64,000 nt of DNA from the sequence record PQ287644.1. One strand, given 5' to 3'. The notes under the pieces are model-generated. The model saw nothing but the letters and a program-made list of their open reading frames with translations. It did not search any database and was not told where the DNA came from. Shown piece after piece: positions 32,801-42,641 of this stretch (within the stretch, counting starts at the first letter, position 1; each line of letters begins with the position of its first letter). A program made the position numbers and the translations under genes.

Positions 32801-34484
32801 CCGCTTGGGACTTGAATTGGTCTTTATCCATCACCCGGTTAAAGGTATCTGCTACCTTTTGGTTATGGCTGACCAACTTACCCCGCACGTAGTCATAACT
32901 CGATGCTTTAAGGGTATCATCCCCTGTACGGATCTTCTCAATCGACAAGTGAATGTGACTGAGCAGTTCGGGAATCACTTCATTCAGGGTACGGGAAGAC
33001 TGTTTGTTCCAGATCTCCGGTTCGTGGGCATCCATTAACCCGCGACGTTTCAGGCTGTAACGACTCCCGGTGGGTTGGTACATCTCATCCAACAACCCCC
33101 CCATGCCTTTATTCGCCCCTTTCTTCAGGGTGTTAATAACCGTCCATTCCACTTTACCCAAGGGTTTTTGACCTGAACGGAGCGTACTGAGGTATTGTTC
33201 GTAGTCCCCGTCCTCGTCAAACGAGGATCCCCAGTTGTGGTATTCCGAAAGGGTATTGACCATCCCTTCCGCATTACTGAGGTTATACGACGCTATGTTA
33301 CCCAAGTCCGTGAGTTGTGCGTATGCGTTATCCGCCCATTTCCCCAGTTCCGGGAATTGTTTCTTGAACTTAGCAACGTATTCCTTACCTTTCCGGGAAT
33401 TGATCATCCGGGGGAGGTTGCTAATGAACATTTGGGCTGCAACGTTACCCACCATGGTCCCTACATTGAGCGGCATGCCTTCCGACATCTCCGCTGCCAT
33501 GCGCATAGCACCAATCAGGTCACCTGCACCTCGGATTCCGTCCCCTCGCGCATCCTTACCGAACCGCTCGTTAATAAACTCACGTATTCCTCCAAAGGAG
33601 CCTTTAACCGTATTGAAGACCGATTCCCGAATGCTCTTACGCATCGCTTGACTGTGGGTGGTCTTTTCGTAATCACTCTTAGCGGAGTTCAGAGCGATGG
33701 TCTTCAGTTCAGCAATCATCCGGTGATTACTGGCTTCCATGAACTTGTAGAACTTCGCGCTGGTCAAATAGGAACGAGCCAACAGGTTCACCTTGAGGGT
33801 ATCGTTCCTCAATTGAACTTTACGTTGGTAATTCACCATTTGTTCCAGCAGTTGGTTACTCCGCCCAATACTCAGGTTCAGGGTATTCAACCCCCCAATG
33901 GTGCGGCCGCCTACCTCGGTCATCATGGTGGTAATGCTTTCACCCACCCCAATGACCGTTTCCCGCTCTAACAGGGAGTTGGCGTCTTCACTCCCCAGCA
34001 GGTCTTTCACATCATTTTCGTCCACATTTTCCATGGACGGGGTGTCACTCGCCGACGACGTATATGGCTTCCAACTGCTGAAGTCATTCTGACTGAACCG
34101 AGTCAGCCCACTGGCTACACCCCCGGTGATCTTATTAGGAGCTATTTTACCTAACTTATCACCACCCCGTTTAGCCAAGTATTGGAGGTCCACGACTGCA
34201 TCGTAGCTTTCACGTTTAAGTTCGTCTACGATCTCTCTCCGACGACGGTTAATATCCGACGCCGTCGTAAAGGCAGTCCCCCAGGTCTTAGGGAGGACCA
34301 TCTTCAGGGTGTTCAACCGAGCATCGGTGTCCCCTACTGTCTGATTCACTACACCTGACAAAAACCCGGTTGCTACCGAACGAATGAACCCCGGTTTCTT
34401 CCCATCGAAATCGGTATCGAAATCAATATCCCCGGTAAAGGGATCCTCTCCCCAATCGAAATCATCGAATGTGTTATCCGCCAT
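26853..34484 (-). CDS. Giant tail-associated peptidoglycan hydrolase (2543 aa; phiKZ gp181 position) with GH19 and M15-like domains
   Basis: YESSGY...GDGYRYRGRGFIQLTGRANY (GH19); NDAYH...GAHPKGLALDF...GGHIH (Zn peptidase). Confidence 0.85.
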   Translation of the reverse strand: MADNTFDDFDWGEDPFTGDIDFDTDFDGKKPGFIRSVATGFLSGVVNQTVGDTDARLNTLKMVLPKTWGTAFTTASDINRRRREIVDELKRESYDAVVDLQYLAKRGGDKLGKIAPNKITGGVASGLTRFSQNDFSSWKPYTSSASDTPSMENVDENDVKDLLGSEDANSLLERETVIGVGESITTMMTEVGGRTIGGLNTLNLSIGRSNQLLEQMVNYQRKVQLRNDTLKVNLLARSYLTSAKFYKFMEASNHRMIAELKTIALNSAKSDYEKTTHSQAMRKSIRESVFNTVKGSFGGIREFINERFGKDARGDGIRGAGDLIGAMRMAAEMSEGMPLNVGTMVGNVAAQMFISNLPRMINSRKGKEYVAKFKKQFPELGKWADNAYAQLTDLGNIASYNLSNAEGMVNTLSEYHNWGSSFDEDGDYEQYLSTLRSGQKPLGKVEWTVINTLKKGANKGMGGLLDEMYQPTGSRYSLKRRGLMDAHEPEIWNKQSSRTLNEVIPELLSHIHLSIEKIRTGDDTLKASSYDYVRGKLVSHNQKVADTFNRVMDKDQFKSQADTSLRLVDSIDPNKELSNEARRVLAMQLVQNADKRKGFSPYLYMNLETKGVNRQVADEIRELFQRNFDITPEAFTAFKEGSTLDRASAIARLPTEQARERAAKLTEQSNLLGRFMPDIAERVDMLRSSGYYNVMKEAGIIKSENGHDEVNMDTFRNVLQSFIDNPDRAMTYDNPLEEAVRKTRSFGRRGRGRRDSGGVIAAENAQLNETLQGVRETLDKLGGHIEQGGISRSGLTDPSSLFTTLNDQVTQGNSLLGKLVELGGNRNDILTKILERQPYEKTTPEAEEVIQQQKRSILERIKSTSFGDLFNKGIDKLLDNQPLVLGGLLGGLAGMAIYNPKGAALVGGGLGLGMAYNKLRARAAARRAEDTEDLYEEGSDTPILESFKLFKGEYLDMLTGKIIQGWDQITGSIKDLANGAVIGASRLAGKLFTEDNKEVFLKGLNKVRDLFMKAFNWLDPVNRVKGLWDKARTRLYRMDIYIEGEDEPVLLGSRFGKGQYFKRSGDGFVELQGWDEIDGPVYDKEGNTLITAEEYDRGLKTSMGTSINKLGAGLKQAGQFGLDLFGKLKDRAGGYAKGMGDRVKNPFSMDHSPVVNSVDRIYYLLLKHWGYESPDGSPNPFTPPAPGSQDAPEGPPGSLGDRNDLTLTEALMEKNPALKDALERFRAAKGKAGEGDNTDRFRRSASSNDATRANSLADRAQKLQEEKDNTVKNAIISIAENFGFGMKDEKELGKKKKFGIFGLLSSLVGGVKKGFEWLTSFLGSEVLWSGFSALFKFGRMGLKLLTIIAKGVAGGLGGLLNGLGGLGHLGKLGAGRAGLIGAGALSAYEMYQVATDEETKKLGTADQILKVGKAGNSLYQQVGATAGLLGGQTIAKWILEKVKGKSPTTDALGSSMYSPFGVMLGTSKWGWDSLFGSGKGKQTELRMVQYGLSDPQGPLAAKILNVENLLKDHVVIGNGRASLSKQAPIEEVLRLFVGDPQDRNQIGEVFTWFNGRFKPVYLTYLACLDAVKLRSLKDYDDSSDLIVYKVAKQAHSALSGLVPSPYQIVAKIDKETPLLDQQMTIIRVGNLLDALKKYVGAKDPSIDPFAVSTVKGQSLESLQKERVQLERKLEDRSTQWKDFGEKMEATDRLKEVKGEIDRLGKAYTANAVVGQIYIQDLMPDGKALDMLTAIRVATYGNDKDVPWRVEAVLKLERHCESLFMAKGDDMVFKGNIGELFGRFKDAFRVDDRYVDAWCKWFRDRFLPVLTNYMTLMKKYRRGLPGVVWRTLSATARYEIAKELTQTQVNGVFGFTISVWNVRAAPFAWETSPGRSDKVDRMLNLLGEASVEAKLKDPELEAGKTNAQTWAEKISPHRVGGGFTDQQANVSTPEQFRSRRDSALGGMYGTFGGDAGNTYSSDGRFRTPENAFGFTPITGDSDTSHLDMTGVRTNQGTDRGVSVPKPLAEQLIIREMLKQGFTDPREIAEMLALTNYESSGYSRTTENMKYSSPERLVQLFREVKSMEQARALVQAGEVAIANTVYGGGKGASLGNREAGDGYRYRGRGFIQLTGRANYRRVGQELGIDLENRPELASNDPNVMAAIAVNFFRNSKLLRSISQTGDFGRAATGLNGGNPLPEMPQRYALYLNYLKKLQSGELTTADKTAGSGLGSQTGSDLYGQEAPSEPQRPQVSRPAPGVVGGSLPSLNGTMGGGGGQYGSGDNGGMIVNTNTPGSSGLRLKSPEAIAGGEHHPAVEELGKIIQQTVPGFRYFSALNDAYHVNKGSKGAHPKGLALDFTLVNGAQGSDQAVAIVTDILRRAGLSPQEFQVINEYRSRTALGTGGHIHAAFKSPEAANKFLNAVRGGQSANGQDTTGLGGGVVGPMQRNVPPTPTPTFGNPATDVPISTPRSNEGSPPPSAPQPVPSAPFEPVPQSPRGTEALTTARSDDSALVAELKASLGKLGDNSSDTNSILAEIYKVLGRMAEMQDKQVNQGTDKTVRLN

Positions 34485-34514
34485 TGTTAATGCACTCCCG
34501 CATAAGGAAACCGT

Positions 34515-35955
34515 ATGAAACCGACTAACATTACCCTCTTAGACCCCCGGACGATTGTTCCGGGTGTCTTTAAACCTATTACGTCTACGGACTCATTTGA
34601 AGGGATGACTCAGAACCTCAATGATGATGGTCTCTTCTCCCTTGACATCTTCGGTAAACTGGGTAGTAAACAACGTGATAACACGGAAGCGTATATCGAC
34701 GTTAAACTTCCCATCTTCAATCCCACTTACCTAAAAGCCCTTATACAGATCAAAAGTCTGTATCATTCAATTTTGAAAGGATCGGAATACGCGGTATGGG
34801 ATCCCGAACTGAAGGATTTCATAAAATCGAACATCCTGGAAGGGGAAAAGGGTTTCGCTTTCTTCCTGAAACATTTTGATGAAACCGTCTTCTCCCTGAC
34901 CCCCTCTCATAAACGCAAACAACGGGTGGAACTGGCGAACCAATTCCGTAACACGGCGTTAACGGATAAGGTCCTGGTCATCCCCGCGGGTCTCAGGGAT
35001 ATCCAATTCAATCCAGATGGTTCCCACACCGAACCTGAAATCACCGAATTCTACCGCGCCTTAATGTTCCGGGTGAGGGTGATCCTCGGGAATAAGGAAG
35101 ATGCCCTGAACCCCCTTTACGATACCGTTCGGTGGGGGGTACAGAATGCTTTCTTGGAATTGGATAATTACCTCTTTGGTTTACTCCAGGGGAAAGGGGT
35201 GTTCTCCAGCGTCGTATGTCCACCCGGGGGTTCACAACAGCACCCGGAACGTCATTACCGCCCGTAAAGTCTCCAGGACACGTTTAGACTTCGACGACGG
35301 TGTAGGGCCTAACTCTGCGGACATGGGACTCTACCAAGCCCTGCTGAACTTCCCTTATGTCTGCATCAACGCGTTAACCAACGGCTACCTTTCCAACATC
35401 TTCACCCCCAGCTCTCAAACCGCTAAGCTGGTTAATACCAAGACCCTGGAATACGAATACGCTGAAGTCTCCCCCGATGTGGTAGAGAAATGGACTACTG
35501 CCACTGGGTTAATGAAACTCTTCAACGGGTTTGCTGATCCCTCCCTACGGAGTAAACCCATTGTCATTGAGTGGAGATACTTAGCCCTCATTTATGATGA
35601 TGGGGCTGATGTGTGTGTTCTACATGACATCAACGATCTCCCTCAAGGGAAAGACCGTAAACGGGTGAAACCTATCACCTACATGGAACTCTTCTACTTG
35701 AGTTGTCACAGTGTCATCGAAGAACAGATCACGGGACAAACCCGGTATCCCATTACGGGAATTGGTTCTATCTTCCCGGCTAAGGTGAACCTACGCACCA
35801 CCACCAATGCGAGCCAGAGGGTGATCCGTAATCCGATTGATTGGAGTGTACGGGAAACCTGTAAACGGTTCCCTAAACGCGAAGCGCATCCCGATTACTT
35901 CGATGCCATGTCCGTAGACCCCTCTAGAGAAGCTTTGCTCGACAGTGACCATGAT
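34515..35955 (+). CDS. rpoC: Virion RNAP beta'-like subunit, exon 1 (two apparent single-G deletions at 35196-35199 and 35226-35230)
   Basis: GLFSLDIFG; restored GKGGVLQRRMSTRGVHNSTRNVIT; ends LLDSDHD immediately before the intron. Confidence 0.85.
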
Positions 35956-35985
35956 TAGATAGTGATGCATGATATAAACTCACTA

Positions 35986-36040
35986 TACAACTCCTATTGT
36001 ATGCGGAAGTGTTCGCATTCGACCATAAGGAGTTGTAAAG
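35986..36040 (+). promoter_or_regulatory. SD-sequestering hairpin with internal TATG upstream of the intron HNH gene
   Basis: TACAACTCCT (35986-35995) pairs perfectly with AGGAGTTGTA (36028-36037); TATG at 36000-36003. Confidence 0.65.
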
Positions 36041-37312
36041 ATGCTAACGTGTTTTGGAAAGAAATACGTGTTGTCTACAACTAACACGGTTTACAATGTC
36101 ACCGATAAGACAGATGTTCCAGTCCATCGGATGACAGACGGGAATACGTTCTTCATCGCACGGGGCGATGGGGACGAACTGGTTAAGATCAAACTGGGGT
36201 TAATGATCCTCCATGGAGAAGGAAAGTTCCATCTTCCTATCTCTGAATGGGAACAGGTGAAAGTAGGTTTTCTGGATGACGATACAGGAAACTTTGCAGC
36301 GGATAACCTTTACTTGGTCTATCCTGAAGAGGGTATCCCTTACCCTGAACTTTCCGGGTACTACTACATCCCTGGGTTTGAACTCAACGCGATCAACCGA
36401 GATGGTGTGGTATACCGAACACTTAGAAAGAATCTTTACCCACCGTATCTGGGTGGTAAGACCGTTCCTAACAGTTTCTACCCCTTTGTTCGACTGGATG
36501 TGGTCAGTGGGGATGAACGCAAGTATGTCCACCGGTTACTGGCGGAGACCTTCGGTAAACCGCCTAAGGGCTACCCCAAGCTACTGGTCGATCATAATGA
36601 CGGTAACAAGATGAACTTCAAGCTCTTTAACTTGATTTGGGTTACCGCTAAGGACAACTCCTTCAAAGCGTACAACAATCAAGAAGCGAGAGCGGACAAT
36701 AATCCCCTGGAGGTTTTTGACAGGGAATTAGGTCAAGTCTTTAAGTACGTCAGTCAAAATGAGTTTGCTAGAACCATGGAGGTGGATTCTTGGTGCATTG
36801 GTCTGGTGCTCAAACGTCCTCGCTCGGTGTACAAGAACAGGTACGTTCTTCGTCGGAAGGGAGATACACGTGACTTCCAAGAGATCTGGGACTATAAGCC
36901 CCCTGTGGGTAAGAAGATCCTTGCCCGGAATGTCTTCACCGGTGAAATCACGGTGTATAATTCATTGGCGGAGGCCTCTAGAGCAACACAGGTAGGGACA
37001 ACAGGCATCCTGACGTCCCTGAGTAACACCAACCCGAGATCCGCCTTTAAAGACCTTCAATTCAAGCGGGAGTCTGACGAGACCCCTTGGCCCGATTTGA
37101 ATGAATACGAACTGGAATGCATCCGGCGCAAGATGCACCCTGCTACAGCTGTGTATGAAATGTTTGATTCGGTAACCCAGGAGACGTCGATTGTGTATGG
37201 CGTTGATGCAGTTACCCGAATCACCGGAGCCAATCCCCGTACCGTTATCGTTTGCGCACGAGAAGGTAAGTTGCTCCATTCCCGTTATCGTTTCAAGAAA
37301 CTTACACGTTAA
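36041..37312 (+). CDS. Intron-encoded HNH homing endonuclease
   Basis: YVHRLLAETF...VDHNDGNKMNFKLFNLIWVTAKDN, followed by about three NUMOD1-like repeats. Confidence 0.9.
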   Translation: MLTCFGKKYVLSTTNTVYNVTDKTDVPVHRMTDGNTFFIARGDGDELVKIKLGLMILHGEGKFHLPISEWEQVKVGFLDDDTGNFAADNLYLVYPEEGIPYPELSGYYYIPGFELNAINRDGVVYRTLRKNLYPPYLGGKTVPNSFYPFVRLDVVSGDERKYVHRLLAETFGKPPKGYPKLLVDHNDGNKMNFKLFNLIWVTAKDNSFKAYNNQEARADNNPLEVFDRELGQVFKYVSQNEFARTMEVDSWCIGLVLKRPRSVYKNRYVLRRKGDTRDFQEIWDYKPPVGKKILARNVFTGEITVYNSLAEASRATQVGTTGILTSLSNTNPRSAFKDLQFKRESDETPWPDLNEYELECIRRKMHPATAVYEMFDSVTQETSIVYGVDAVTRITGANPRTVIVCAREGKLLHSRYRFKKLTR

Positions 37313-37727
37313 CGAGTTTATATCCATCACTTAGTCCGGCTAGGCACGAAAGTCCTAGACCGTATTCCTCTGAATTGCTGGGAGTTCACAAAAGTCTGTT
37401 GGCTACAACGTAACTGGAAACAGTAAGCGTGAATGCGACCGAAAGGTAGAAAGAACAACAGACCTGACCTACGCTAACCAATACGGCTAAGGGTCGTAAA
37501 CAAGGGACAATCAGCCGCTAAGACGCTACCGGGTATTAGACCCTATGCGTAAAGTTCAACGACTAAGGGAGTTATGACCCTGTACACCTACCAAGGAAGG
37601 GGGTGGAAGTGGAGGTGACCTAAGGGGGAATAGACCTATTCCCTACGGTCAAGATATAGTCTGGCCCTGTTTAATAAACAGGCAGGCACCTGAGCGTGCC
37701 GGGTCCTAGTATGGACTGACCACCGCG

Positions 37728-37910
37728 GGCGATCAATTGTCGAGCCATTCTGTTGTAGCGGAAGACAGCAAACAACAGGCCTACGAACTCTTTGGGAAAC
37801 GGGAGTATTACATCAGTGGTACGGGTCGGTTTTTGTACGATCCGATCAATGAACCGATTCTCTTTATGTTTAAAGCAGCGACAAGCGGCTTAGAGGATAT
37901 TGAGGTATGA
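37728..37910 (+). CDS. rpoC: Virion RNAP beta'-like subunit, exon 2 (60 aa; absent from the track)
   Basis: GGC GAT CAA...: GDQLSSHSVVAEDSKQQAYELFGKREYYISGTGRFLYDPINEPILFMFKAATSGLEDIEV*; stop overlaps the ATG of the next gene. Confidence 0.85.
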   Translation, partial: GDQLSSHSVVAEDSKQQAYELFGKREYYISGTGRFLYDPINEPILFMFKAATSGLEDIEV

Positions 37911-40900
37911 GCAATCCAATTACGTATTCCGAGTTCTTTAAGCACTTTGTGCTGCGTAAGAAACAAGACGTTGTAAACCCTAAAGTCCTGGGTATTGGTG
38001 AAGTGATCCTTCCTAAGGGGAGTTTACTGCACTTCGTACCGAAGACGATTAATGAAAAAGGCCCTGGTAGTAGTGAAGCGTTTATCAGTAACTTCCCTAA
38101 AGAGGTCTTTATTGAGTTTGTGAGGGACGGGTATAAGCCGGTGATGGGGCATGGGCGTACAGTCGCTTATGACTACCCTAAGGCGGTTAAGGCGTACCGA
38201 GCGAGTCACTACATGTACAGCTGGGTGCGTGAGATCAGCTCGGTGTACAACAAAGAGAACGTGCTGGTCGTTAAGAACTACGGGATGATCCCCCAGGGGT
38301 TCGTTTACCGTCCGAGTATTTTCGTGAATTATGAAAAATACTACAACATGATGCACCTGCTCATTGAGAACGTCAATGCGGAAGCCGAGAAAGGGGTGCG
38401 TCGGCAGTATATGCGGATTGACCTGCCGTTGAACCTGCCGTCCCTGGTTGAGCTTGAGAAAGACTACGGGCGGTTTATCGATGGGTTTAAGGATGGGTAT
38501 CCTGTCCTGATGCGCAATATGCTGGAGAGTACGAAGGCTGAGAACTGCTATTGGCTGTTGGACCTACTGGGGTTCCTGTTTGGTCAGTATTCGTTCAGTT
38601 TGTTCGGTAAACTCACCGACCAGGCGTATAAGGATTTGCATATCCTCTTTACGTCTCAAAGTAAAGTCATTGTGGTACAACTGGGGCTGTTGAAGGGTTG
38701 GTTAGATGAGACAAATCCTAAAGACGAGAAAACCTACCCCTCTGCTCGGAAAGAGTTTGAAAGTCTGAAGACATTGACCCGCCATAATGCGGTTAAACGT
38801 TTCTATTTGGCTTTGATGAATCTTTCTCGTGGAGGCGTTCCTGAGAATGTACTCATTAAAGAGGAAACGAAAAATGTCATCCCAATTGCCGGAGAGAAAG
38901 GTACCGTTGACCAAGTGGCTGCGGGAACGTCACGAGAAGAAGAAGAAGAAACATCCAATCTTCCAGAAACCCGAGACCATACTGGCTCGGGCACGGTTCC
39001 CCGTGCTGATCGTCCTGCTGGTTCTATCCTTGATGTTTTCAGCCGAAGTGAAGGACCTAGCGAGGCACATGACGAAGAGCAAGACACAGCGGGAGAACGA
39101 GGTGTTGATTCAAATCTTGAAGAGTGGACATCGCCGGTAGATGATGAACTGCTGGAGGTGGAGAAAGTCCAAACCGAGATCAATACCAACAAGAATGTGT
39201 TTAAGACGCCTGAGAGTGGTGTAAAGCGGGCGTTGGAGGAGCGGGCTAAGGAAGGTACGCTGACGGTGGCTGAACATGATTTCTTCATGCGTAAAGCGAC
39301 CCGTTATCAGCACATTGAGATGGAGAACGGTCAAACGTTCGAAGAGTTCATTCAGATCAAACCCGAAGAGGTTAAAGACCTGGGTGGAGAGATTGAAGGT
39401 GAGTTTCTCCCCGTACTGGATGAGAGCATGTTGCGGAGTCGTGCCAAATCCCTCAAGATCGAATATCCTCAGAAGTTTTTACACCGGGATATTGGTCGAA
39501 TGGTGTTGGGTCTTCAGAACGCTGGCTTTGCGATGAACGACTACCGGCGTGAGAAGGTCGTCAGCGTAGAAGGCAGTTACGAGGTCCACAGCATTCAGTT
39601 GCACGAAGTCAATGGTGATCAGGTCACTGTACATACTCGGCTACCTACGGTGCTGAAAGACGGCACCTACGTCATTGATGGTGTTAAGCAACACATGCAA
39701 CTGCAACGTCGGGAGAAACCCTTCCGGAAGATCAGTCCTCGGGAAGTGGTACTGTCGAGCTACTACGACCGTAAGCTCATGGTGAGTCGTAGTCCGAAGA
39801 TGGTGGATAACCTCTCTACGTTCATGGTGAAGCAAATCTCCCTCCAGAGTAAGCGGAAAGGCTATACGGTCACTAAAGGCAGTACCTGGGATCGTTCCCT
39901 TAAAGCCCCCCGGATTTACAGCATTCTGGCTCGTCAGTACAAGTACATTACTGTCGACGGGTTGGTATTGGACTTCCGGTTGAAGGATCTCCTGGAACTC
40001 CACCCTGAGTTCAAAGCCTATACCCGCCCTGATCGGTTCTTGATCGGGGTAAAAGACGGATTACCCTTGATCATTGATGATTACGGTAACCTGTACAAAG
40101 GGGAAGAGGAACTCGGTACTGTTGAAGACTTGCTTGGTATTGATGTTCGTAAAGCGCCTTTGGAACACGTGGTGATTAACATCAGCGGGTACTCGTTCCC
40201 GTTGGGGGTGGTTCTTTGCTTCTACTTCGGTATTGATGAACTACTGCGTGTGATTAAAGCCACGACGCGTTCAGTACCCGTAGGGACCCGTCCTAAATTG
40301 ACTGAGGATGAATACGCGATTCAGTTCAATGACGAATACCTGATCTTTAACCGTCGGGAGAAGCTCACCACGTTGATCTTCGGTGGAATGCCGAAGTTGA
40401 ACAACATCAGTAACTTCAGTCGGAGTGATTTGAATAATAACAGTATCTGGAGTGCGTTAATGGGAGACCCTCGGGTTCGTCCGTCTCAGTTCCAGGAAAT
40501 GAAGAACCTTTTCGATCTCTTTATCGATCCCATTACGAAAGACCTCTTGAAAGAGATGAAGCTGTCTGAAGACTTCCATTACTTGCTGATTGATGCGGCT
40601 AAGGCATTGGAAACGGATTACAGTCGACACGAGGTGGAGATTGAAGAGCAGCGCATTGTGGGGTATGAACGCTTCGCAGGTCATCTCTACACGGAATTTG
40701 TAAAGTCCATTCGTCAATACCGGAATAAAGGGAAAGGGCGTAAACACAAACTGGACTTTAATCCGGATGCGGTTATTATTGCAATTGGTACCGACCGGTC
40801 TACGAACTTGGTGGAGGAAGTGAATCCGGTTCACCAAGTGAAAGACCAAGAGGAAGTGACGTTTGGTGGAACAGGTGGTCGTAGTGAAATCACCATGGTC

Positions 40901-41107
40901 AAACGCGCACGGACTCAGCTGGAGAGTTACAAAGGGGTCATCAGTGAAGCCAACAAGGACAGCGGTAAAGTGGGGTATGTGACCTACACCACCTCTGATC
41001 CGGGTATCGCTGATTTCCGAGGCAATGTTGATCCCAAGAACAAACGTACTCCTACTGGTGACGGTTCGGTTACCATGAACCTGATGTACGGTGGAACGCA
41101 TGACGAT
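37907..41107 (+). CDS. rpoB: Virion RNAP beta-like subunit, exon 1 (phiKZ gp178-like)
   Basis: EVNPVHQVKDQEEVTFGGTGGRS...SYKGVISEANKDSGKVG...GGTHDD, matching the beta core and fork region. Confidence 0.85.
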
Positions 41108-41522
41108 TGAGCTGTTGTGAAAACAATAGATCACTCAGTCCAACCAGGGAGTAATCCCTGGTTGCCATTACCTTTAATTGCGGGAACCTACTGAGAGCCT
41201 TATCTACCAAACCCGAGCAGGAAACCAACGGGTGGCCAACCATAACGGGTTGGGGACGGTAATAACGATAAGGATTGGGGAACCCTACGCAGCGAAGCAC
41301 CTACGTATTGTCGAGAGGACAAGATAGGGTGAACGTTCAACGACTACGGATGAAATTTCCGGTAGAGGTGTCAGGATGATACTTCCAAAAGTAAGGTTGC
41401 CCTGTATGCTTGAGGTGTGAATAACACTGAGTACAGGGATGAAATATAGTCTCGTCATCTAAGGGAAAACCTTAGAGCGTGGTGCTACGCGCACCGGCGG
41501 ATAGGATATCCGTGAAGAAACG
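41108..41522 (+). ncRNA. Group I intron (415 nt), no ORF
   Basis: U|...G boundaries; AATTGCGGGAA 41176, ACGCAGCGAAG 41287, GTTCAACGACTACGG 41335, AAATATAGTCT 41442; P7 GACTA/TAGTC; P2 and P8 stems visible. Confidence 0.88.
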
Positions 41523-42641
41523 GTCAAACGAGCAGTATTCACATCGACTCAGGCCTCTCAAGCAGTGATGGCTAAGAACTACGAGATCGTTACCCTGAGA
41601 ACGGGTTACGAGAACGTACTGGCTCACCGGACCTCTGACCTCTACAGCAAAGTAGCCGCTGAAGATGGTAAGGTCACTAAAGTGGAGAATGATCGCTTAC
41701 TCGTCGAATACAAGGATGGAACAACGGACTCGTATCCCTTGGGGTTGGTGATTGGGGAAGCCAGTGGGGAATACCATCCTCATAACCGTACCACGGATCT
41801 GAAGGTCGGCGATACCTTCCGTAAGGGAGATGTCATCGGTTGGGATGAAAACTGGTTCGGTCGAGATCCCTTCTGCCCAGGGCAAGTCGGGGTTAAGATG
41901 GGTAAAATGTGCCAGATCGTTATGGTGGAAGATCAGGATGTGTACGAGGACTCTATTGCAATTTCGAAAGAATTGGCGATGGAAGCACGTACCCCATTCA
42001 TTAAACCCAGTCGGTTTGCCGAGGACGTGTCAAACAACCTGGTAATGCGGGTTAAGGTAGGAGATTACGTCGAACAGGACACGATTTTATGTGATATCGA
42101 AGAGCCTCACTTGGTGGAGGGCGAGGAGCTTCCTGAGCTCGAAGCAGACATCAACAAACTCGGTATCAAACAGATCCGTTCGAAGCATCATGGAAAGATC
42201 GTACACATCGATGTTCGGTACAACTCTCCCTTAGACAAGATGTCTGACTCGTTCCGTTCGTTCATTGTTCAGAAGGATAAGGAAACGAAACGGAAAGGGT
42301 TGGTGGAAGGAACCGGTGTCGAGAACAATGCCATTTCCACGATGTTCAATCTTAATCGTCCCATGTTAGGTCCAGGTAAGGCGTTCATTACGTTCTACAT
42401 CGAGTCGTTAGACCCGAGTACCAATGCGGATAAGTATGTCATTGGGAACCAGATGAAAGCCACTGTGGGTCGTATCATGGAAAGACCGCTTAAGACCGCC
42501 AGTGGGATTGTCATTGATGTGAAGTCGAGCTTTAAAGGGATGTTTAACCGAATGGTGCTCAGTTTGAGGAACAAGCTGGTTGCTAACGAGTATGGTTACC
42601 AAATCACTCGCCAGGCCATTAAACTCTACAGAGGTAAATAA
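41523..42641 (+). CDS. rpoB: Virion RNAP beta-like subunit, exon 2
   Basis: VKRAVFTSTQASQAV continues HDD (compare bacterial HDDANRALMGSNMQRQAV); EDSIAIS and ADKYVIGNQMKATV double-psi motifs. Confidence 0.85.
   Translation, partial: VKRAVFTSTQASQAVMAKNYEIVTLRTGYENVLAHRTSDLYSKVAAEDGKVTKVENDRLLVEYKDGTTDSYPLGLVIGEASGEYHPHNRTTDLKVGDTFRKGDVIGWDENWFGRDPFCPGQVGVKMGKMCQIVMVEDQDVYEDSIAISKELAMEARTPFIKPSRFAEDVSNNLVMRVKVGDYVEQDTILCDIEEPHLVEGEELPELEADINKLGIKQIRSKHHGKIVHIDVRYNSPLDKMSDSFRSFIVQKDKETKRKGLVEGTGVENNAISTMFNLNRPMLGPGKAFITFYIESLDPSTNADKYVIGNQMKATVGRIMERPLKTASGIVIDVKSSFKGMFNRMVLSLRNKLVANEYGYQITRQAIKLYRGK

Follow-up and report, generated by a model that had tools for sequence, protein, structure and literature searches.

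The window analysed here is a stretch of 64,000 nucleotides (nt) from Pseudomonas phage HHBS8_1 (PQ287644.1), an EL-like Elvirus. Its positions 34400-38100 show 100% identity with that record and 97-98% identity with phage EL and seven other Elvirus records. The genes at this locus are, in order, the homologues of EL gp183 (tail lysin, minus strand), gp184, gp185 and gp186, and the subject of this study is the element that separates the two coding pieces of gp184, the gene for the N-terminal part of the beta' subunit (beta'-N) of the virion RNA polymerase (RNAP). An initial annotation had proposed that a group I intron cuts the catalytic motif of this polymerase in half, and this structural reading is supported by a covariance-model match, by covariation in six relatives and by the adjacency of the exon ends in homologues. 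What that annotation said about the sequence itself proved correct throughout. The features are as follows, with the evidence in brackets (ORF, open reading frame; aa, amino acids).

34515..35955, + strand: exon 1 of the virion RNAP beta'-N gene (EL gp184 homologue), ending ...LLDSDHD (ORFs; profile match to AR9 and bacterial beta')
35956..37727, + strand: group I intron, 1,772 nt, in-frame TAG first, terminal G last (Rfam, relatives, exon adjacency)
35953..35957, + strand: 5' strand of P1, exon GAU and intron UA, with the 5' splice site after U35955 (pairs with 37332-37336)
35961..35979, + strand: 5' strands of the P1 extension, AGUGAUG at 35961-35967 and GAUAUAAAC at 35971-35979 (duplex energy)
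35986..36037, + strand: hairpin, its 3' strand carrying AAGGAG, the Shine-Dalgarno sequence of the HNH ORF (RNAfold)
36041..37312, + strand: HNH homing endonuclease ORF, 423 aa, EL gp185, in the terminal loop of the extended P1 (Pfam, I-HmuI alignment)
37316..37331, + strand: 3' strands of the P1 extension, GUUUAUAUC at 37316-37324 and CAUCACU at 37325-37331 (duplex energy)
37332..37336, + strand: internal guide sequence UAGUC (U35955.G37334 wobble)
37340..37358, + strand: P2 hairpin (7 pairs, 5 with compensatory changes in relatives)
37365..37684, + strand: catalytic core (Rfam alignment, RNAalifold, P3 duplexes), with the helices of the next nine lines
37365-72 with 37610-16, + strand: P3 (core helix)
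37376-81 with 37511-16, + strand: P4 (core helix)
37385-37508, + strand: P5 with a large extension (core helix)
37522-51, + strand: P6 (core helix)
37561-65 with 37657-61, + strand: P7 (core helix)
37566-81, + strand: P7.1 (covarying)
37585-37605, + strand: P7.2 (covarying)
37617-50, + strand: P8 (core helix)
37662-84, + strand: P9 (core helix)
37685..37727, + strand: P9.1 (37685-37700), P9.2 (37702-37717) and 3' tail to G37727 (relatives, RNAalifold)
37728..37910, + strand: exon 2, 60 codons and a stop, GDQLSSHSVV...EDIEV (tblastn to the C-terminal ends of homologues)

The records of OBP, N1M2 and SXP01 name their gp184 homologues as the beta' subunit of a virion-associated RNA polymerase. 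A sequence search of the Protein Data Bank (PDB) with EL gp184 alone gave no match and a five-sequence profile was required: the profile of gp184 and four homologues matches the AR9 beta' N-terminal subunit (7S00/7S01, E = 1e-11) and also bacterial beta'. By profile, the end of gp184 aligns with the AR9 loop ...LSGDYDGDVLN (DYDGD), which identifies the interrupted motif as the DxDGD loop that binds Mg. Searched singly against Pfam, the beta' pieces and exon 2 gave no match. Synteny with the tail lysin gene and the annotation of the homologues in N1M2, OBP and SXP01 suggest that the beta'-N product is packaged in the virion.

Exon ends and intron fold

As initially annotated, the beta' ORF ends ...LLDSDHD, with TAG directly after it (35956-35958), and GGC GAT CAA behind the terminal G opens a 60-codon frame, which stops at 37910 and overlaps the ATG (37907) of the next gene, beta. 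Exon 2 shows 54-73% identity with the C-terminal ends of uninterrupted homologues (tblastn). When the tail of exon 1 and exon 2 were searched separately with tblastn, their matches abut in Aphrodite1 (15514/15515), SXP01 (248250/248251) and OBP (259512/259513). In translated alignments the intron-less homologues read ...GGDYDGDQLNS... and ...GGDFDGDALSA..., and the closest intron-less relative, the Erwinia phage RisingSun, reads ...GSDHDGDALSA.... The proposed splicing to DSDHDGDQ is thus supported, as ...LLDSDHD/GDQLSS... (the slash marking the junction, here and below) aligns residue for residue with these homologues. The joined protein has 541 residues, compared with 518-550 in the homologues, and the junction GACCATGAT/GGCGATCAA is the sole nearby pair of a U at -1 and a terminal G that is in frame and gives D-G-D. 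The His at the Phe position, to which the same annotation had drawn attention, is real; yet it is a lineage trait unlinked to the intron, because intron-less RisingSun (GSDHDGD) has it too.

Compared with EL and HHBS47_1, exon 1 of HHBS8_1 carries two deletions of 1 nt each, at ~35195 and ~35226, that disrupt it and that the initial annotation had missed. They remove one G of a G run and one A, so that exon 1 appears as two overlapping ORFs (34515-35267 and 35146-35958) with the break inside the conserved GKGGVLQRRMSTRGVHNSTRNVITA stretch. Both are private to the HHBS8_1 record and are probably sequencing errors; if they are real, the gene is dead regardless of splicing.

A search with the Infernal group I models, one of the checks suggested at the outset, matched RF00028 (Intron_gpI) at 37309-37681 over the full model (1-253) with 46.2 bits; the E-value is 4.6e-10 when 2.1 kb is searched and 1.4e-8 for the entire window. 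Related introns are found in the same gene of six jumbo phages, namely VP4B, PDCC-1, FishSpeaker, Vibrio phage 2 TSL-2019, Raoultella phage VB_ZK_P1 and Klebsiella phage phiKp_32. Their RF00028 scores range from 34.5 to 53.9 bits, those of FishSpeaker (53.9), TSL-2019 (51.7) and VP4B (51.2) being above the gathering score, and the core identity among the related introns is 56-72%, except for the VP4B/PDCC-1 pair (92%). Covariation was assessed with RNAalifold and duplex calculations on seven cores, that is, the window intron and the six relatives. The RNAalifold structure has 82 pairs, 47 of them with compensatory changes on both sides, and contains P2, P4-P6, P7, P7.1, P7.2, P8, P9, P9.1 and P9.2, and by duplex calculation P3 forms in all seven cores with differing sequences. 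The Rfam match and this covariation bear out the proposed group I core 3' of the 423-aa ORF. The intron ends at G37727, and its terminal base is G in all six relatives as well. P7.1 and P7.2 lie between P7 and P3, an arrangement typical of subgroup IA phage introns. An intein was considered and rejected, because TAG stands at the start of the intervening sequence and the exon frame is interrupted by stops.

In P1, the exon GAU pairs with the guide GUC, and the pair at the splice site is G.U, or G-C in the case of PDCC-1. The guide GUC, just 5' of P2, is invariant in all eight introns examined, and between the two introns inserted at the same site there is a compensatory change at +2 (A-U in EL, G-C in phiKp_32). 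Past a small bulge, the P1 extension (35961-35979 with 37316-37331) has an energy of -23.4 kcal/mol versus a shuffled mean of -8.6. Energy minimisation gives a similar helix in six of the eight introns (phiKp_32, PDCC-1, TSL-2019, VB_ZK_P1 and the two of the window, the second of which, in the beta gene, is described below); the VP4B helix forms without exceeding its own shuffles, and that of FishSpeaker is found by hand pairing only. At the tip of the P1 extension, EL has the nuclease ORF, whereas the loop is short in phiKp_32 and VP4B, which lack an ORF. As the extension closes around either an ORF or a short loop, the ORF is an insertion in the P1 loop.

These observations bear on two other explanations. 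If the ORF were a free-standing homing endonuclease lying between two genes and unrelated to the flanking RNA, it would resemble phiKZ gp179, a distant homologue that was not seen to be spliced (PMC10914365). The flanking coding pieces, however, each encode half of a single conserved protein, the two strands of the P1 extension enclose the ORF, and the intron occurs without an ORF both at this site (phiKp_32) and at one close by (VP4B). This explanation, already contradicted by the exon adjacency in homologues and by the P1 extension, is the least probable of those that we considered. A group I intron might also splice at another junction, in view of the short P1, the lack of a P10, and the presence of further G (37725, 37728 and 37729) and further U (35952 and 35956) near the proposed ends. 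But only 35955/37728 is in frame with D-G-D restored, 35955 is precisely where the invariant guide G forms the U.G pair, and phiKp_32 gives the identical junction at the same site together with the compensatory change at +2; we consider splicing elsewhere to be very improbable, if slightly less so than a free-standing nuclease.

Splicing and the points against it

It is very probable that 35956-37727 is a mobile group I intron with an I-HmuI-type nuclease, which splits the DxDGD loop of beta'-N and is spliced 35955/37728. Sequence comparison shows the fold, the boundaries, the restored frame and the family of the element, together with purifying selection on its nuclease. Splicing and cleavage are deduced from structure, conservation and the analogy with PhiPA3 gp210, and catalysis by the core, the specificity of the nuclease and the timing of its expression are inferred as well. 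In the pre-mRNA, the last exon bases GAU and the intron bases UA would pair with the guide UAGUC (37332-37336), and the U.G wobble would mark the 5' splice site. The P1 extension would close round the 1.27-kb nuclease ORF and bring the guide beside the core (P2-P9.2, 37340-37717); guanosine-initiated splicing would then join U35955 to G37728 and free the intron after G37727. The spliced mRNA would encode the 541-residue protein with ...LLDSDHDGDQLSS..., and unspliced RNA would terminate at the intron-opening TAG. Exon 2 has no ATG, and no Shine-Dalgarno-like sequence is present in the bases before it. With these signals missing from exon 2, the Mg loop divided and an in-frame TAG at the head of the intron, production of the virion RNAP probably depends on splicing.

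Several points weigh against this interpretation. The Rfam score misses the curated gathering score of 50 by 3.8 bits, and an Rfam scan of the window at the gathering threshold gave no match, because 46.2 bits falls below the 50-bit cut-off; the intron appears only with E-value thresholds. P1 has only three exon base pairs, and hand inspection found no convincing P10 between GGCGAU of exon 2 and the bases that precede G37334. As some functional introns have a weak P10 or none at all, its absence is not disqualifying. Of 24 candidate public sequencing runs, the four that were mapped show flat depth through exon and intron, Nextera/TruSeq adaptor ends and no joints, and are therefore probably DNA and uninformative on splicing. 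An intron-less Elvirus allele of the beta'-N gene was absent from the phage collection searched, and homing was thus not observed. Furthermore, ONT-cappable-seq of phiKZ saw no splicing at predicted intron nucleases, including gp179 (PMC10914365), and predictions of intron nucleases can therefore fail in this phage group.

An alternative is a decayed intron remnant that no longer splices, in which case beta'-N would consist of two polypeptides (481 aa, and ~57 aa from TTG 37737) that assemble non-covalently. RNAP subunits of jumbo phages are already divided among several genes, a TTG-started ORF is present at 37737-37910 and appears in the GXNNE2 record as a hypothetical protein, and the Rfam score is below the gathering cut-off. 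On the other hand, the break would sit inside the five-residue Mg loop, no Shine-Dalgarno-like sequence precedes the TTG, Gly-Asp-Gln would be lost, and the homologues always have one uninterrupted ORF at this point. Moreover, the core helices keep their pairing through compensatory changes in diverged relatives, and the ribozyme part is 97% conserved between the window and GXNNE2. We regard a remnant as unlikely to a high degree, though a little less so than splicing at another junction.

The EL beta' intron is best described as a real and fairly ordinary case of a known type of phage parasite, with precedents in PhiPA3 gp210, 201phi2-1 and AR9, and its main interest lies in the pattern of sibling sites described below. 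In general, phiKZ-related giant phages often carry self-splicing introns in RNAP subunit genes (bioRxiv 10.1101/2020.12.14.422802). The GenBank entry AJ697969 already notes for EL ORF185, the same element at 98% identity, 'contains putative intron-encoded HNH endonuclease'. We found no publication describing the EL beta' intron, and neither a publication nor a record that defines its boundaries or exon 2. The feature tables of EL (two records), HHBS8_1, HHBS47_1 and GXNNE2 give the ORF only, with no intron boundaries, exon 2 or joined coding sequence; the feature names under the match in MIZ-Pa99, IR-QUMS and GXNNA8 indicate the same pieces, and the phiRU record is unannotated. A coding sequence joining exon 1 and exon 2 is absent from all EL-like records inspected. 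Those that are annotated list a truncated beta' without the last two residues of the catalytic motif, with at most a stray small ORF, and in none of the records inspected is this essential virion enzyme given as one joined coding sequence. Phage-therapy work makes use of EL-like phages, which are found together with phiKZ-like phages.

The intron-encoded nuclease

The assignment of the 423-aa ORF as an HNH nuclease holds: Pfam HNH_3 (PF13392) matches residues 161-207 with E = 4.7e-11, and the catalytic stretch aligns with residues 40-97 of I-HmuI (1U3E; E = 1e-3). The nuclease shows 30-37% identity over its full length with the nucleases of the related introns, and a search of IMG/VR with the nuclease alignment recovered only EL, PDCC-1 and TSL-2019 again. 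The ORF is intact in all nine EL-like records, the ratio of nonsynonymous to synonymous substitution rates (dN/dS) is 0.11-0.32, and by these comparisons the nuclease is under purifying selection. RNAfold of 35980-36060 (-23.9 kcal/mol) places the Shine-Dalgarno sequence inside a hairpin, and its burial in this predicted fold may limit translation of the nuclease from the pre-mRNA.

The phiKZ homologue gp179 (PHIKZ179, NC_004629.1 186666-187505) is 25.6% identical to the EL intron nuclease (E = 8e-10); its free-standing HNH gene is flanked by those for phiKZ beta'-N and beta. The homology hints at exchange between free-standing and intron-borne nucleases at the RNAP locus. In the phiKZ-like phages PA7, fnug and W10-2, nucleases beside beta-gene intron cores are ~26% identical to gp185. 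We take these to be of the PhiPA3 gp210 type.

The gp210 nuclease of PhiPA3 introduces nicks into the virion RNAP gene of phiKZ and confers a competitive advantage (PMC11620839; bioRxiv 10.1101/2023.09.30.560319). By analogy with gp210 (PMC11620839), and given an HNH motif that aligns with I-HmuI and purifying selection on the ORF, the EL nuclease may target the polymerase genes of competitors. During co-infection it would most probably nick intron-less alleles of the same conserved stretch, and nicking would drive homing, or damage the polymerase gene of the competitor if recombination cannot repair the cut. A nuclease aimed at the most conserved 15 bases of a virion polymerase gene is a candidate weapon of the PhiPA3 kind.

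The elements of PhiPA3 (gp210; Birkholz et al., Science 2024, PMC11620839) and 201phi2-1 (gp273/274; cited in PMC2919709) are likewise group I introns with HNH nucleases in jumbo Pseudomonas phages and, as here, lie directly after conserved Asp residues in the gene of a virion RNAP subunit. They differ in residing in the beta gene (DD site), whereas the EL element lies in the beta' DxDGD loop, and the DD site of the window is occupied instead by a second, ORF-less intron (41108-41522). Nicking by gp210 has been shown experimentally; the EL-type element is known from sequence alone. In the Bacillus phage AR9 and in Staphylococcus jumbo phages, RNAP subunit genes are likewise split by introns (Lavysh 2016, cited in bioRxiv 10.1101/2020.12.14.422802), which belong to another phage lineage and apparently lie at other sites; the splicing in AR9 was shown experimentally, whereas for EL it is deduced from the nucleotide sequence. 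The SPO1/SP82 DNA-polymerase intron with I-HmuI (PDB 1U3E) and the Bastille I-BasI intron are also phage group I introns with HNH_3-type nucleases, inserted as here in codons of a conserved polymerase motif, though in a different host gene. I-HmuI has 174 aa compared with 423 aa in the window nuclease. The SPO1 intron ORF, unlike the window ORF, is not known to lie in the P1 loop.

Sibling introns in the RNAP genes

Homologous introns with homologous nucleases are found after each of the three Asp codons of the beta' motif. The site after the first Asp (D/xDGD) is used in TSL-2019 (GGD/YDGD) and also in the metagenomic locus L098, that after the second (DxD/GD) in EL and phiKp_32, and that after the third (DxDGD/Q) in VP4B, FishSpeaker and VB_ZK_P1. 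At all three sites the codon before the intron is GAT and the guide is GUC (TSL-2019, EL, phiKp_32, VP4B, FishSpeaker and VB_ZK_P1). In phiKp_32 an ORF-less intron (L009 2479-2858) follows D-F-D, and in VB_ZK_P1 a nuclease-bearing intron (L008 1017-2753) follows D-F-D-G-D. The exon-1 tails of these two phages are 100% identical over about the last 200 residues, whereas their introns, at sites 6 nt apart, are only 66% identical; they therefore represent independent invasions rather than a slide of one intron. It is possible, though we put this forward tentatively and as slightly short of an even chance, that sibling mobile introns, whose guide needs only an Asp codon GAU, are rivals for a single catalytic motif from which each keeps the others out, with crossovers that are at times lethal. 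If so, several intron lineages contend over the 15-nt DxDGD stretch of beta'. As a natural system, the three alternative insertion points lend themselves to the study of shifts in intron site choice and of exclusion between siblings. We found no description of the three-site pattern in the literature.

The Photobacterium phage PDCC-1 (L005 1180-2899) carries a hybrid intervening sequence. Its 5' part and nuclease are 100% identical to the TSL-2019 intron (first-Asp site), and its core is 92% identical to the VP4B intron (third-Asp site) over the aligned core, mostly 86-98% per 50-nt bin. The entire 5.3-kb locus lacks the four codons, YDGD, that separate the two sites, and the last exon codon is GAC instead of GAT. 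The hybrid is either a destructive recombinant of sibling introns or an assembly chimera.

An IMG/VR scan for the core motif found more than 100 loci, mostly introns in unrelated genes, and only L023, L024, L098 and L105, on metagenomic jumbo-phage contigs, lie within RNAP genes, these four being partly truncated. L098 is a metagenomic phiKZ-like gene with an ORF-less intron directly after LGAD; L024 has a group I core near the GK.G...R.V region of beta'-N, L023 has one at the beta DD site, and L105 has one within or just after DYDG.

The second group I intron of the window (41108-41522) is 415 nt long, has no ORF and matches Rfam with 39.3 bits (E = 2.3e-8). It interrupts the neighbouring gene for virion RNAP beta, whose pieces are as follows.

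37907-41107: beta gene exon 1, ending ...GTHDD
41523-42641: beta gene exon 2, beginning VKRAVF...

The beta gene is uninterrupted in Elvirus GXNNE2, where HDD/VKRAVF are adjacent, and the intron boundaries are thereby confirmed; GXNNA8 is likewise absent from the list of matches to this intron. Its P1 pairs GAU/UGAG with CUCAGUC (G at 41138), the same design as in the beta' intron. It follows DD, and its homology to the beta' introns is not demonstrated despite the shared P1 design. Going by published descriptions, this second intron seems to occupy the position at which the PhiPA3 gp210 and 201phi2-1 introns lie (after two conserved Asp; phiKZ gp178 D1072). An earlier study took both beta pieces in EL for separate ORFs (PMC2919709). 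Two places match the intron-1 core query in EL, phiRU, MIZ-Pa99 and IR-QUMS, and one in HHBS8_1, HHBS47_1 and the GXNN records; the extra match is either intron 2 or a third intron.

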